Notes under the pieces: model-generated | The model's database searches: none | Told to the model about the DNA's origin: nothing | Seen by the model: the letters and a program-made list of their open reading frames with translations, nothing else | Assembly: GCA_964035545.1 (NCBI GenBank) | Contig: CAXIUT010000155.1 | Location: 21,394 to 49,515 of the forward strand | DNA from: Bugula neritina | Taxonomy: Eukaryota; Animalia; Bryozoa | Length of the DNA stretch: 28,122 bases | Direction: 5' to 3' | Shown: positions 1 through 28,122 of the stretch, in pieces | Layout of the letters: every line of letters starts with the position of its first letter | How positions within the stretch are numbered: the first letter of the stretch is position 1 | Translations under genes and position numbers: made by a program

Positions 1-99
1 CCCAACCCCACCCCAACCCCAACCCCAACCCCAACCCCAACCCCAACCCCAACCCCAACCCCAACCCCAACCCCAACCCCAACCCCAACCCCAACCCCA
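1..99 (+). repeat. Left telomere, (CCCCAA)n
   Basis: About 16 tandem C4A2 units at the very start of the window, the Tetrahymena-type ciliate telomere repeat in C-strand orientation. Confidence 0.97.
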
Positions 100-1768: not shown

Positions 1769-3441
1769 TCAATTAATAACTCCATTTATTTAAGGTTCAA
1801 TTAATGGTCCCACTAATTTCTGAATCTGCCACATAGCTCCCAAACATTCCTCATCTTCCATATGTTTTCCAGTTATCTGAATTGCAAGAGGCAAGCCTTG
1901 ACTTTTTTTAATACTTTATTCAACTTTTTTCTCAAAAATATTACTTCCTCGATAAATAGTTTCACTTTATCGGACTAATCGAGTGGGAACTACTCCAGCA
2001 GGTAACTCCATAATATTTTGAAAGCAACAATAGGCTAATTGATAGACTAAGAGATCAGATGTCCCTATTAAAGGAGCAGTAAAAGGCATAACAGGACTAA
2101 TTAGAATATCTAGTTAATCATTAACCCATTTTTCGATAAATTATCTTTTAACTGACTCTAATTATAGATGTATTTTAAAAAATTACTTGCATGTTTGATT
2201 CTTAGAATACATAGAATAAATTTCTTTCATTTGTTGATCTAGAGATGTTCCTTTCCTCATTTTAGATGCAATTTTACCAAATAATTCAACATCATAAAAG
2301 CCTTTTACTTGTTAAGTAGAAATATGTCCTTCCATTCGCTTGTATATCGATTCAAAAAATCCAATTTCATAAACATATTTGAAAAAAAAATCTTTAAACT
2401 CATGTAATCTAGGAAATTTAAACTAGATAACTTTATGTTTATTCTCTTTTAGTTTGTTTATTGTCTCATCTATTGTGTTAATTAAACTAGGAGCCACCTT
2501 CATTTAATGGTTCTCGTACAAATGTCCCACTCTTAATTTCTTTCGTTTGGATGATTCATATATAGCCTCTTTCCATTCCCCTCCATACATATAAGGATCA
2601 GTTTATGATCTTCTACCCAATGTTTTTGAACACAACCAGACCAAATCTTCAACATTTCTGGTCACAAAACCTAGGCAAGGATCAACATCTCCAAGTTTAA
2701 TACCCTAAATAAAGTATTATTTACCTCAGATCCACTCGGTGAAACCCTGCCTTTAGTAGAAAGTCTTTTTGATCCAGTTGGCTTGTATCCATAAACTCCA
2801 CAGAATGCAGCTGGAATTCTTGCAGATCCTCCAGAATCAGAAGCAATTCCAAATACTGAAGCTTTGGTAGAGACTAATGATCCCTATCCTCCTGATGATC
2901 CACCACTAATAAATTCAGGATTATAAGGGTTTTTTGCAATCCCAAAAAGATCTTCACTTCCTGATTAGATTCCCAGAAGGCCTTGAGGTACATTAGTATG
3001 AGCAAAAGCAATACAACCTTCCTGTTCTAGCAACTATACAACAGTTGAACTGGTTTTTGAAGGTTTCAAATTATCAGCAAATCCGCAAGTTTAAATCATT
3101 CCATCGACCTTAAGATGATCTTTTACTGAGAAAGGTATTTTGCTCAGACCATCTTTATCCAAAACTCTTTCAACATTTACATCAGCAAGTGCATTTAATG
3201 ATCTTACTTCAGAATGAAGACACCTTGTAGCAAATGTTCCGAAAAGCTTGTTATTTTTATTTTTAATTAGATCGTGAATTTTGCAATTTAGAAATGATGT
3301 ATTAACCTTTGCTTTTAAAGGTTAAAGAAGACTGAGTTGTTAAGATTGTCTCTATTTCAGTTTATTAACATTCTTTATAAGATCAGACCTGAGACCAAGA
3401 ATACCAAACCTTCGAAACAATCTTATTATTTTATTCAACAT
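1769..3441 (-). CDS. Amidase-signature (FAAH-like) enzyme; 20-nt intron 2705-2724
   Basis: Motifs IPFSVKD, HTNVPQ, NPYN...GGSSGGEG and SDSGGSARIPAAFCGVYGYKPTG; Lys/Ser/Ser catalytic triad present. 551 codons after splicing, TGA stop. Confidence 0.93.
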
Positions 3442-3470
3442 GATAATAATAATAATATTCTACCAATCAC

Positions 3471-4607
3471 TCAAAAGGAAGTCTTCAAAAAATTAATATC
3501 GAAATCTTACAAACACTTAGCGTTCATCCTATTCTTTATCAACTTGGCATATGTATCGTTCAACATCTCTGATTTCAAATATTTCATCAATTGACTCTCA
3601 TCCTTAAAATTTAAAATTTTTTGCTCGTTCACAGACAACATACGAATCAAAAGAGAATGAACTACTGACTCACCATCAAGAAGAAATAGATCAAGAATGA
3701 CTGGAGCTAGATCTGGTGGACAGTTATAAAGACAAATAGTCACATAGTATTGAGCAAAAATACTTAAATCCCACTCCATCTCATGTATTCTTTGAAGTAT
3801 TTTTGGAACCTGTTCTTCCATCAACAACCTTAGTACCTCTAACATTCTTTGCACTCCTGTTAGATCAGCCTCAAACACTTCTGCCCATCCTTTCCACTTC
3901 ATAATACCGACCATAACCCAAAAGACTCTTTAAGAAAGTTACTCCTCAACAACAGCATGTCCTTTAATATTCACATCATTCTATATTTTTAACAATTTCA
4001 ATAAAACTCCTCCTATTACATTCATGCCCTGAATATATCCCTTTTTGCTCAAGTTAGCATAAGCTATTAAAATTTCTCTCAACTCCTGTAAATTGTTCGT
4101 AACTACACTGGTACGAACCACATCTTTATCTATACATTCTATATCGTATTTAGACAGTCTTTCAGGATTGCATAGCTAAAGAAATGTCTATTTTGCCTAT
4201 TTTTTCATTTATCGAGTATTTGCTAACACCTGCCAAACATCTTTTCTCACTGTATAGTCTATTCCTTGAAAAATAGAAAAGTAGAGATCTTTTTTGGAGA
4301 CCAATGATAAATCTGACTTCAATATAATTTTTTTCCACTGGTCAATGGAAAGCAATTTCCCTTCACATCTCTTACCTATGAGTAAAAATCCCTTCAGATA
4401 CATATTCTAGACTCCCTATGACTCGTAAGGTATTTCTTCCTATTTATTAAGATCTCCCAGCAAGACAAAGTCTTCGCTTGGAGGTTAGTCCAATATTTCT
4501 GATACGATAACCTCAAATGAACTTGAATTATGATTAGATTGTTTGATAGATTGACCATTTTATTCCTATTTTTTGAAGTAGGTAGTAATTTGTTTGATAA
4601 AGTTCAT
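3471..4607 (-). CDS. TBC-domain Rab GTPase-activating protein
   Basis: GIDYTVRKDVW, IDKDVVRT (IxxDxxR arginine finger), GYIQGMN (YxQ glutamine finger), ILDLFLLDG. One 379-codon ORF that joins two ORF-track fragments once TAR is read as Glu. Confidence 0.93.
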
Positions 4608-4645
4608 TAATAATGATAATAAACTATAAGTAAGAAGTGATATAA

Positions 4646-5546
4646 TCATTCAACAGACTTCTCTACAGTCCGCTCCATCATATTCTGATAATTTCCCTCA
4701 TAAAATTGGAACCACTTCAAATGATAATCAGCCATTATTTTCATATATTCAGGTTAGTATTGATTCGTCCCAAGCAAACCACCAACTGAGCTAACAACCT
4801 CTACTCGAGTCACTACTGGCAGACATTGAACTTTTATATTCTATTCTTGAGCTGAATATTCACTATGAGATGAAGGTTCAGGCGAGATAGAATCTGATGA
4901 AGCAATATTTTGCTTTTTAACAAATAGTTCAGTAAAACTTTAGAAAGCTAAATAATTGTCATTAATCAACTTTTAGCTCTCTTTCTTATTGACTCTATAC
5001 TTAAGTTGTTTAATTGTCTTCATTAGCAACATATCTTAAAATCCTATATTAAAAATGAAGTACCATTTCTGCCCTAATATATTTATAGTAATAACTCAGT
5101 TTTAAAATCGTTAATAAAACCTGTATTTTTTTTCATAAAATATTTAACAATAATCTTTAGTAAAAACCTAATATTTCCATAGAAGTAGTTCTTAATCTTA
5201 GTTTGAGTTCTGAATAAGGTCCAATTTACCTTCCTGGTAGATATTTTTGAATTAGGAACCATTTATGCCCAAACTAATTAAATTTAACGTAGAGAGTTTA
5301 AAGCTATTAATCACTCCATAGCTATTTATTAACAGATGGATCTAAATGGTTAATAAACCTCAATATTAATATAAAAATACCTTTATCGACATTAAACATC
5401 ACTTCTGAAGAAGCCTTTTTTTTTCAACTCATCAGATGCTGTCTTCCATTTCTTACTTTTTATAGAATGACTCACTCTAACCAATATTTAGTCTTCCTGC
5501 ATTAATTTAGATCTACCTAAGTGCCCCAAATTTTAAGTTTTCCCAT
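4646..5546 (-). CDS. R2R3-type Myb DNA-binding protein; introns 5497-5516, 5359-5380, 5210-5229, 5044-5063
   Basis: Spliced product WGTEEDEIL...KKWKTAS...RSDVECRERFINHLDPSVNKELWSDEELETL...GHKWFLIQKYLPGRTQTKIKNYFY gives two Myb repeats. Removing the four introns leaves 273 codons ending in TGA. Confidence 0.9.
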
Positions 5547-14992: not shown

Positions 14993-15267
14993 TCAATCAT
15001 TCTTATTTTGCTTTTGAATCTTAGATATTACAGCCAAATCTTTATGAATCTCGTCTAAATTAGCCCTTATCCGTCCTATAGCTTCTACTCCTTCCTTAAA
15101 ATGGTTGTAAGCATCTTAAATAAATTTATTTGATAGTTAGTTGACATTAGTCAACATGAGGTTTGTCTTATCCAACTCCTCTAATCTTAGTTCAAATAAA
15201 AATACATCTGATTTTGGTTTTTAACAATAGCTACATATTTTTACTCTTCTAATAACTATTTATCCAT
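14993..15267 (-). CDS. KXD1: KxDL-motif protein (KXD1, BORC/BLOC-1-associated); intron 15186-15205
   Basis: 84 aa; AIVKNQNQILEELDKTNLMLTNVNELSNKFIEDAYNHF...IRANLDEIHKDL matches the KXD1 pattern (Q..ML...EKTN.ML.N.N.LS......F......K.DLD.I). Confidence 0.75.
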
Positions 15268-15286
15268 AATAATTAAATATCAAAAA

Positions 15287-16975
15287 TCATGCCAAAAATT
15301 ATGATAAAGTGATTCTCTTGCTTCTATGCTTCCTTTCATATTTACGCTTCTGTTCTTCTTACAACCTCTCCTGCTCGTTAGTCCATCTATCTCTTAGTTG
15401 CTAAGAAAATGAAGTATTTGTCTTACAACAGACTACTATCTAATGAATACATGGTAACATTGTCTTTAAAGATTACTCACATTAACAACACCACTTTTCT
15501 TATTTCTTAATTACCTATAAATAGTGATTGTTCTCTTAAAAAACTTGATATTTTATGGGCTATATTTTATTAATTCTCAAACTGACAGAACCCAATACTT
15601 TAACAATAATGTAATCCATGACATTTTTACTTACTTGAGTTCGAATAGCATTCAGTTCAGGATAAATTGTCATCATCTTATTAGGATCAGCATATTCATT
15701 ATGAACAGTTTCACTTAAAGATATAATCATGCTCTTCACTTTACTATAAAAATTTTTACTTCTTTGACCCTTCTGAGCCTACTTATCATAAAGAACCTTG
15801 TAAAAAACTCTTATCACAGAATAATCATATTTCTTCCTTGGATTTATTTTATTACTTACAGTACGATATGGCCCCACTGGCACAGCTTCTATCTGAGACA
15901 AACATATTCTATCTGCCTGTTCTATCAGTTATTCAACGTCTATGTTTGAACCAATTCCATCCAATAACTTTAAAAATGTTCTTTTTTGAGGTTAACGACA
16001 TAACTAGCCATAACTCTTTCTAAATTTGCTATTATTTATATGATTTTTATCACCATATCTTGCATAATCATAAATATGATGAGCAGTCAGAAATCCCTCT
16101 TCTTTTAACCCAATTATAGCCTAATCAAAGTAAGCATTTGTTTAAGTAACGATAGTTTGAGGTTTATTTTATACAGGTTTCAAAAAGCTTTTAAGTAGAC
16201 CTTTCATGTGATCAGCATCTACAGTTTTAATCAAACAAAATCCAAAAAGTATCCTCTACATATCTCTTCCGATTCCCATCAAAGCACCAACTCTCCACCT
16301 ATTGATTTGCTGTCGATCATCAACAGCAATAAACAAAACTTATCCATATTTTTTATAATTTTTTTGCATTTGATCATCAACTATAACAATAGATTTCGTG
16401 ATGGTTTTAGGTTCTCTTTCTATTTTCGAAGTGATATAATCTCCATAGATGGTATATCTTTAGTTTTTTAATTTTTGAACTAGTTAATCGATTTATTTTC
16501 CATCATAGAGCAAAGCATTTCTTTTAAGTTTATCTACAGCTTGTGAATAAAGTTGTTAGAATTATTTTTATGTTATTCTATACTTACTACCTATATCTGC
16601 ACACAACTAATACTTCTACATCTTTCCATCATCCTGCTGAAGAAACCTTTCAATTTGCTCAATTATTGATTGATGATTCGAAAATGCCTGCTTCAAAACA
16701 TGTTGATGAGTATGATTGTATTACAATAAAGTGTAATTTTCTTACTCTTTCGTCTTCACGTACTTGAAAAAGGCCTAACATTGCTTGCATTGAATATTTA
16801 ATGTTTCAACTCCATCACTTCCTGTGATCACTGTTGATTAAAAATTAACTTCTCGATGTTCACGTTTGCATTCTTTTCTGATCTCATCATTGAAGTTCTG
16901 ACGACTCTTGATCTTATCGTAGGGTTTAATTTTGGCTGGAAAGCTAAAACCTTCTATAGGGTGAGAATAACTCAT
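15287..16975 (-). CDS. FAR1/FHY3-like Mutator (MULE) transposase-derived protein, probably domesticated and catalytically degenerate
   Basis: 562 aa with an N-terminal CKQCEAF...YNHTHQHVL zinc finger (FAR1/WRKY-GCM1-like), a MULE core NYKKYGEVLFI...MGIG...ILFGFCLI...LLKSFL...KPQTIVT...HHIY, and a SWIM finger WCCECEESLKTMLPCIH followed by RWT. Intact ORF; no TIRs seen. Confidence 0.82.
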
Positions 16976-17716: not shown

Positions 17717-19460
17717 TCAATTAAACTATCTCTCAAAAATAAATTATAAAATACTTGTTTTTGGGGGGGTTGGGTTGGGGTTGGGTTGGGGTTGGGGTTG
17801 GGGTTGGGGTTGGGGTTGGGGTTGGGGTTGGGGTTGGGGTTGGGTTGGGTTTGGAGGATCAATCCAATCAAGAAGAGATTTATTTATATTTTGTTTTATC
17901 TTCTCATTCTTCAAAGAATAACTACGCCTTCTTTATTCAGGATACTTCGAATGACTTTGGTGAGAGTTAAATATTCGATCTCTCAGTTTTCCCACCTTCT
18001 GCAGCTGATTCATTCTCACTTTATCCTGAATCTATCTCCACCAATCCTTGTTGGTTCTCTATGAAAGCGCCTCTTCTATTCTTTTGTCAAGAGATTTATT
18101 TTGTATTTTACTAAAGTCAAGTTTTCTCTCCTTTTGTCCCATAATTTTATGATATTCAGCTGTTTGCTAAAACACGCTATTTTTTCTAGGTTTTCCGAAC
18201 TTATGTTAAGCTATAAAACTTATTTGGACATCAGGACTAGGAATTTGAGTTTGAAATTCATAATCCTAATTAAATAATTTATATATTTGCTTCACAAGAT
18301 CTGGAAAATCACCAAACTACATGACCTTATTACCTTTTTTTCTTCTAGGTGATTGACCCTATTCATAATTCTCATAATTTCTTTTTGCCTCAGGAGGAGC
18401 TATAGTGCTCACTCCAACTATCGGTATATTCACATACTAAAGAAATAGACTTGTGATATTTTTCTTTTCCAAAGAACTAATATAGCTTTAGAACTAATTT
18501 AACATCTCTGCTGATATTTTTTTGATAGCAGAGTCATTCTTTTAAAAATCTCCCTGAAGAAATCTTTTGTGATAATACTGTGATTCTTTCAAAACTCCTT
18601 CATAATAATAAGCATTCCCCAACAAATCGTAAATAAGCAGCTAACTATCGATATTTTTTATTTTCCAAGCATACTGCAAAGCTTTCTTATATATTTTAAT
18701 CGCATCTTTATGACATTTAATATCCATACAAATATTTCCCATTGACATCAAAGCCTCAGTTTTAATATAAAACAAATCACTATAAGAAGCCAATAATTTC
18801 TATATTAACTATTATTTACTGCCTGGTTATAATAATAAAAAGCTCTATTATAATCTTTAAATTGATAACTAATATCCGCCGCCAATATCACCAATAAACA
18901 AAGTAACCTTAACTGATTAAAATCAACTGCTTCATTCATCAACTTATATACCTCTAAATATAATAGTAGTTACTCTTTAAAATACTATCCAAAGAATTTT
19001 GCTAGTATGTTTCCTTCAAATCTACAATTGCTCTCATCAAATACATTTACTACTCCTTTGGCTTTAAATTTTACTTTTAAATATAGTGCTTCACAATATG
19101 AAAAGTATTATTTATCTTCTTGAATCTTTCTCTTCTTTCACTCTTTACTCCAGCTAGCTACTATGTCACAGGCACTTTTTTTAATTTTTTTTTATCATCT
19201 TTCATATCCCCAACAGTTTATAAAAAAAAATTACTCACAGCTTCAGCAACTGGCTGATCAATAGTTTTAGAAGTATCTCCTCTCTTTTTTCTAGAATGCC
19301 TTCGCTATCTGTAAGCTTCTCGATAATTAAAATTAGTGAATGTACTGTACTTATCTTTAATTTGAACATGAAGAGACGGATCGATGGTTTTAGATGCCTG
19401 TCCAATGAAATCATCAAGATAGTTAAGATGAGAAGTGTTACTTACATATAGTGAGCTCAT
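17717..19460 (-). CDS. Tetratricopeptide-repeat protein; introns 18954-18973, 18800-18819; contains an in-frame telomeric tract
   Basis: TPR-like YNRAFYYYNQAK, EALMSMGNIC...HKDAIKIYKKALQYAW and IYDLLGNAYYYEG. The frame runs through 17761-17850 and ends KTSILEFIFEREFN-TGA (17719-17717). 568 codons. Confidence 0.78.
17761..17854 (+). repeat. Interstitial telomeric tract (GGGGTT)n with variant G3T2/G7T2 units at its edges
   Basis: About 15 telomeric units in the same orientation as the right telomere, flanked on both sides by non-telomeric coding sequence. Confidence 0.93.
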
Positions 19461-28059: not shown

Positions 28060-28122
28060 GGGGTTGGGGTTGGGGTTGGGGTTGGGGTTGGGGTTGGGGT
28101 TGGGGTTGGGGTTGGGGTTGGG
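28060..28122 (+). repeat. Right telomere, (GGGGTT)n
   Basis: About 10 tandem G4T2 units running to the end of the window. Confidence 0.97.

Follow-up and report, generated by a model that had tools for sequence, protein, structure and literature searches.

The window, by which we mean the whole stretch of 28,122 nt that was analyzed, corresponds to G000:C164:21394-49515 of a 216-Mb assembly. The gene under study (hereafter the target) occupies positions 15287..16975 on the minus strand, within a 17.8-kb unit that carries telomere repeats in the correct orientation at both ends. The main features of the window are as follows:

1..99, (C4A2)n telomere tract capping the 17.8-kb unit on the left
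2662-3597, minus strand, amidase gene in the same unit as the target
3471-4649, minus strand, RabGAP-TBC gene in the same unit as the target
15268..15286, unstranded, 19-nt spacer from the target to the next gene, whose ATG is at 15267 (minus strand)
15287..16975, minus strand, the target, a single-exon CDS of 562 codons plus a TGA stop in the peritrich code (TAA/TAG = Glu), collinear at full length with orthologues of 562-566 aa
17763..17854, (G4T2)n telomere tract capping the 17.8-kb unit on the right and lying within the contig
28061-28122, (G4T2)n telomere tract

Chromosome setting and reading frame of the target

The target belongs to a peritrich-code ciliate living with the moss animal and not to the moss animal itself. 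Peritrichs are an oligohymenophorean branch, and G4T2 telomeres fit an oligohymenophorean. C164 is a scaffold of three telomere-ended ciliate contigs joined by 200-N gaps at C164:21194-21393 and C164:49516-49715, with the window as the middle contig; scaffolding strung separate small chromosomes into C164.

Telomere tracts also occur inside contigs, away from the scaffold gaps (window 17763-17854, G000:C164:6316-6398, C164:13162-13249 and C251:8297-8362). Each contig reads like one complete C4A2...G4T2 chromosome followed by single-telomere fragments that all share one orientation. Past the internal G4T2 tract, the window continues for 10.2 kb and ends in G4T2 again, and the synteny with the orthologous locus L046 is absent beyond that tract (17763-17854). 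These internal tracts may reflect assembler misjoins or real telomere-to-break fusions.

We read the target in the peritrich code because both conserved genes (HSP70) and the orthologues put Glu at TAA/TAG. At five ciliate HSP70 loci of the assembly, TAA/TAG stands opposite Glu 22 times and opposite Gln 3 times when compared with a host HSP70. The target contains 31 such codons in frame (20 TAA and 11 TAG) before its TGA stop at 15287-15289; 18 of the 31 face Glu in the L046 orthologue, and Glu is the commonest partner of TAA/TAG in each orthologue. UAA is assigned to glutamate in peritrichs, as in NCBI table 30 (Sanchez-Silva et al. 2003, cited in PMC4967479).

Introns within the target were considered and rejected, because five orthologues align collinearly with the frame and introns of 20 nt, as in this species, would shift it. 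One such 20-nt intron (GTA...AAG) interrupts the next gene at the same position in the window (15180-15267, minus strand) and in L046:10530-10610. The start of that gene is backed by an N-terminus, M-D/N-K-E-L/M-L, common to the target species and L046.

Read in this way, the target encodes the following elements:

16700..16789, minus strand, N-terminal zinc finger C63-x2-C66-x23-H90-x-H92, with 4/4 ligands invariant in 5 species and synonymous codon changes
15776..16390, minus strand, MULE-like RNase H-type core, approximately aa 196-400, assigned by family HMM, hhalign, ESM atlas and motif spacing
16325..16327, minus strand, Ala217 in the column of the first catalytic Asp (hhalign, orthologue alignment)
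16316..16321, minus strand, acidic pair D219-D220, 2-3 residues past the lost first Asp
16142..16144, minus strand, TAA encoding Glu278 in the column of the second catalytic Asp (HMMER, hhalign, orthologue alignment)
16058..16069, minus strand, remnant of the C/DxxH motif, D303-Y-A-R (orthologue alignment)
15836..15856, minus strand, S-N-K-I-N-P-R (residues 374-380), aligned to MULE N-x-x-E
15443..15487, minus strand, SWIM finger C497-x-C499-x9-C509-x-H511, invariant in 6 sequences; in the target, it reads C497-E-C499-x9-C509-I-H511
15383..15385, minus strand, Trp531 of the post-SWIM RW motif (R-D-R-W531), invariant in the orthologue alignment
15290..15358, minus strand, K/R-rich basic tail with the conserved end T-L-S-E-F-L-A (orthologue alignment)

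A preliminary description of this locus had reported an intact frame only 19 bp from the next gene, with no room for a TIR. The frame is indeed intact (562 codons, no TGA before the stop, orthologues of equal length), the short spacing follows from the ATG at 15267 with its conserved N-terminus shared with L046, and no credible inverted repeats were found around the target. The coordinates given there are exact (Ala217 at 16325-16327 in VLFIAVDD; TAA at 16142-16144 in IVT-E), and DYARY, GPYRTVSNKIN, the SWIM finger C-E-C-x9-C-x-H and RDRWT are all present in the translation as claimed.

The target is a single-copy gene in the assembly, with one DNA match and one match to a 72-aa stop-free piece; a profile of the core matched only the target and a gene on C251. 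No multiple TIR/TSD-flanked copies, which would have spoken for a mobile element, are present in the assembly. The earlier view that the gene is domesticated rather than mobile is thus borne out by its single copy, the lack of TIRs and the telomere-capped unit, as well as by the orthologues, synteny and saturated silent sites described below.

The C251 gene (G000:C251:8219-10147, minus strand; loci L009 and L054) gives the ciliate a second MULE+SWIM gene, in which the D, D, E and DxxH motifs are intact. Telomere repeats truncate its frame on either side; the N-terminal finger is missing, as are a start upstream of the core and a stop ahead of the repeat. The gene could be a piece of a MULE that is catalytically intact.

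Orthologues and selection

A large HMMER search with the 72-aa piece led to two short gene calls, and their contigs together with a second metagenome scan provided the orthologous loci. A first metagenome scan with the same piece gave no match, and word-index protein searches with this piece and with a SWIM piece of the C251 gene returned no candidates. The loci are as follows:

L046, on a 123-kb contig with a GC content of 48%, full-length
L047, partial copy
L048, L049 and L050, from a single species, L049 being full-length
L051, record JACCDV011125706.1, full-length
L052, full-length

The hosts are peritrich-code metagenome lineages, four with a full-length and one with a partial orthologue. 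The full-length frames (L046, L049, L051 and L052) encode 562-566 aa, are 50-62% identical to the target and to one another, have their start Met at the same position and terminate in T-[LI]-S-[ED]-F-L-A. Gene order is conserved as well: window 7.9-17.7 kb corresponds to L046 8.1-19.5 kb and also to L048-50, including genes on both sides of the target. According to the L046 gene calls, these neighbors include WD40, RRM, CH-domain and TBCC-like proteins. At L051, L052 and L047, the neighbors differ from those of the target.

At L047:1-826, the contig opens with two C4A2 units, and immediately after them the gene sets in with its middle part, at the DxxH region; either the chromosome end is truncated or the assembly is at fault here.

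Silent sites are saturated (pS 0.86-0.96, compared with pN 0.31-0.39), and no dN/dS ratio is given for this reason. Across five species, the alignment of 551 columns has 174 that are invariant; more than one codon occurs in 160 of them. The eight zinc ligands and W531 are invariant while their codons vary synonymously. Judged from these alignments, purifying selection maintains the layout in five lineages or more, and a decaying relic is excluded because the protein has been conserved past a full turnover of its silent sites. The search for orthologues and purifying selection, which the preliminary description had proposed as a check, therefore came out in its favor, as did its statement that both zinc fingers keep their ligands (8/8 invariant across the orthologues).

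Mutator ancestry and the degenerate catalytic site

Pfam was applied to six-frame scans and to pieces, free of stop codons, from both the target and the orthologues, and at this scope it did not recognize the target. The MULE model (PF10551) gave 18 candidates in a six-frame scan of the ciliate's own genome assembly, with the target absent even at E 10, and the target was likewise unlisted in the six-frame scan with the SWIM model. The FAR1 model (PF03101) had no match at E 10 in the whole assembly, and the positive controls were equally unmatched. Ten stop-free pieces of the target hit nothing relevant in Pfam; the orthologue pieces gave no MULE match and no match of any model above its cut-off.

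The link to MULE transposases runs through the C251 paralogue, whose product (L009p) passes the Pfam cut-offs for both MULE (29.4 vs 27.6 bits) and SWIM (23.4 vs 19.6 bits). Its motifs are canonical (GFDLTF, IITDE, DMFH and N-V-N-E-Y-F), and the final Glu is encoded by a reassigned stop codon. The target and L009p can be aligned collinearly over the stretch that runs from the core through the RW motif (blastp E 8e-14). The family HMM scores L009p at 67.3 bits, compared with 6.4 bits for the best of 500 shuffles, and hhalign aligns the target family with it over 308 columns (98.8% probability, E 1.4e-16). Motif spacing is close to that of MULEs, at 61 vs 65-67 residues for D1-D2, 25 vs 20-25 for D2-DxxH and 101-107 vs 108-126 for D2-E.

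Weaker matches point in the same direction. For the core piece of L046, 30 of the 30 nearest named clusters of the ESM atlas are MULE or ZSWIM1-3 RNaseH-like (0.94). Below the Pfam thresholds, orthologue pieces matched ZSWIM1-3_RNaseH-like (PF21056; E ~0.02 in two pieces) and DDE_Tnp_IS240 (E 0.001), both of which are RNase H-clan families, and the L047 piece matched SWIM (E 0.058). The AlphaFold model of the stop-free L046 core piece has a strand-helix order that fits an RNase H fold, in that beta-1 ends at the first catalytic column and beta-4 directly precedes the second, at low confidence (mean pLDDT 51); the model of the L046 N-terminal piece is also of low confidence (pLDDT 60). PDB sequence searches with both profiles found no relatives. 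An ad hoc animal MULE profile, built from 3 matches to the host MULE L005, was too weak to reach either ciliate protein as a MULE and matched the SWIM region only.

We accept the target as a MULE descendant because its family matches the Pfam-positive L009p, that is, by transitive homology together with the sub-threshold and language-model matches, while Pfam itself does not assign it. The preliminary description, which had recognized a MULE core with FAR1/FHY3 architecture, thus needs qualification. The core is supported by homology to L009p, although the Pfam MULE model has no match; the proposed comparison with MULE, FAR1 and SWIM models reached the target with none of them directly but connected it to MULE and SWIM through L009p; and the architecture holds as the generic order of finger, MULE core and SWIM, whereas the Pfam FAR1 domain has no match.

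The N-terminal finger is likewise generic in profile searches. Pfam found no FAR1, WRKY or FLYWCH in the orthologue N-terminal pieces, and the ESM atlas returned only generic zinc-binding, IBR-like look-alikes. We take the C-x2-C-x23-H-x-H spacing to be reminiscent of the WRKY-GCM1-type fingers in MULE transposases.

The catalytic columns, mapped by sequence comparison (the structure models, at pLDDT 51 and 60, being of low confidence), depart from the DDE pattern at every position, as the preliminary description had maintained, and the orthologues share the degeneration or carry it further. The first Asp is lost, its column reading A/S/T/A/P across the family with Ala217 in the target; the acidic pair just downstream is DD or EE in every orthologue. 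The second Asp is replaced by Glu278 in the target and by Gln (CAA/CAG) in the four full-length orthologues. In the C/DxxH remnant, D303 is invariant, and the His column reads R/L/I/T/T. The column of the third catalytic residue, Glu, contains no acid: HMMER places P|R of the target and Q of the orthologues there, and hhalign places a conserved Arg/Lys. A few residues away, Asp384 is invariant. Glu278 is probably a derived state that arose by a CAA-to-TAA change, because a tree, albeit weakly supported, nests the target among Gln-bearing lineages. Since selection keeps the gene with Gln at the second position, its conserved function does not need a DDE metal site. In the target species, acids near all three positions (D219/D220, E278 and D384) may nevertheless permit some residual or altered chemistry.

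Putative role and relation to known systems

Overall, we consider it likely that the target is a domesticated descendant of a MULE transposase, most likely non-catalytic, and an ordinary single-copy gene of the somatic (macronuclear) ciliate genome. Two other origins were weighed against this one. An unrelated SWIM/zinc-finger protein with a convergent or compositional likeness to MULEs would explain why Pfam MULE matches neither the target nor its orthologues and why the small animal MULE profile reaches the SWIM region only. However, the score against the Pfam-positive paralogue is more than a shuffled sequence attains, the alignment is collinear over all 308 columns, every one of the nearest named atlas clusters is MULE or ZSWIM1-3 RNaseH-like, and the order of predicted strands and helices agrees with an RNase H fold, if with low confidence, so that we regard such an origin as very improbable. 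Even harder to credit is a resident or recently dead MULE copy, or a pseudogene, in which the frame survived since TGA is the sole stop. TGA-only stops do make long frames commoner in AT-rich DNA, and chance alone leaves several overlapping frames open here over 150-250 codons; yet 562 TGA-free codons have a probability of ~3e-6 at the window TGA frequency of 0.0224 per codon, orthologues of the same length persist in five lineages with saturated synonymous sites, synteny is conserved, and there are neither TIRs nor a second copy.

A further alternative concerns activity rather than origin. In this case, a shifted acidic site, composed of D219/D220 on beta-1, E278 after beta-4 and D384 on the following helix, would make the protein a nuclease- or transposase-like enzyme. 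The acidic pair, which is DD or EE in each of the five lineages, the invariant D384, the Glu at the second position of the target and spacings of 58-59 and 106 residues, near MULE values, would all suit such a site. Against it, four of the five lineages carry Gln (CAA/CAG) at the second position under purifying selection, which indicates that an acid is unneeded there; the His of C/DxxH is gone; HMMER and hhalign put non-acidic residues in the Glu column; and the weakly supported tree suggests that the Glu of the target is derived. An enzyme of this kind is therefore improbable in our view.

For the preferred non-catalytic MULE descendant, we propose a putative mode of action. The protein has kept the ancestral layout, namely an N-terminal zinc finger, an RNase H-type core, a SWIM finger, an RW motif and a basic tail. 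It would no longer cut DNA and would instead bind DNA or act as a scaffold in the nucleus. The basic tail appears to resemble a nuclear targeting signal. MULE transposases recognize the ends of their elements, and DNA would here be recognized through the N-terminal finger, while the dead core and the SWIM finger would serve folding and partner contacts.

Ciliates have repeatedly recruited transposases in making their somatic genome. PiggyMac-like proteins (PgmL) of Paramecium and Lia5 of Tetrahymena, which derive from transposases and are encoded in the somatic genome, have defective catalytic sites and function in genome rearrangement. They provide a functional model for the target, although they belong to a different superfamily (piggyBac, DDE_Tnp_1_7). 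The best Pfam and atlas match of the core is to the RNaseH-like domain of vertebrate ZSWIM1/ZSWIM3 (PF21056), with scores below the cut-off and no claim of membership; like the target, ZSWIM1/ZSWIM3 combine a MULE-like core and a SWIM finger in non-mobile genes.

Macronuclear MULE-domain proteins without TIRs, regarded as domesticated, have been described in Oxytricha, Stylonychia, Euplotes and Blepharisma, whereas the MULE domain is stated to be absent from Tetrahymena and Paramecium (PMC3558436; PMC9942806; bioRxiv 10.1101/2021.12.14.471607). Oxytricha has 9 MULE-domain proteins, one of which combines FAR1, MULE and SWIM, and the spirotrich and Blepharisma genes turn on in macronuclear development, several of them with full DDE triads (PMC3558436; PMC9942806; bioRxiv 10.1101/2021.12.14.471607). 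Like the target, these genes lie on telomere-capped somatic chromosomes without TIRs, and one Oxytricha protein has the same order of finger, MULE and SWIM. As far as published descriptions allow comparison, the spirotrich and heterotrich proteins are Pfam-positive, whereas the target family is Pfam-negative, has a degenerate triad and comes from peritrich-code hosts. Plant FAR1/FHY3 (FRS) proteins also derive from MULEs, have a zinc finger at the N-terminus followed by a MULE core and SWIM, and were co-opted for DNA binding (PMC3558436). They share the finger-core-SWIM layout with the target, in which the Pfam FAR1 domain is unmatched, and represent an independent domestication event in an independent lineage. 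A published peritrich genomics paper does not mention transposases.

As to the biological role, we lean, tentatively, toward a non-catalytic factor for recognition or scaffolding that takes part in programmed DNA elimination, or in the control of transposons, while the macronucleus develops. This role is favored by analogy with the PiggyMac-like proteins and with the development-specific MULE genes of Oxytricha and Blepharisma. A FAR1-like regulator of transcription is possible but rather less likely, and other roles make up the remainder. Exact-product look-ups for transcript-derived records of the target found none.

A broader proposal, which we put forward as speculation and think unlikely, is that a module built on MULE proteins serves peritrichs in programmed genome rearrangement or in the recognition of germline transposons. 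The dead-site protein would then recognize DNA or provide a scaffold, the part that PgmL plays beside PiggyMac, and its counterpart would be a catalytically intact MULE, for example, the D-D-E-bearing C251 copy. Across the whole assembly, which may be incomplete, the piggyBac model (PF13843) matched large host chromosomes only and no small ciliate contig. If true, the proposal would place a MULE module in a lineage for which the ciliate contigs of this assembly show no gene of the piggyBac type.

The target does not represent a new kind of system, as co-option of this type is already known in other ciliates; it comes from a new lineage, and its dead site recalls the PiggyMac-like proteins. Somatic MULE-derived genes, published for spirotrichs and Blepharisma, are now extended to peritrich-code ciliates. 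The target would be a clean case of an old, cross-species MULE derivative in which the zinc fingers were kept and the active site is gone, and, together with its five orthologues, it is a candidate for learning what non-catalytic transposase relics do in peritrich-code ciliates.
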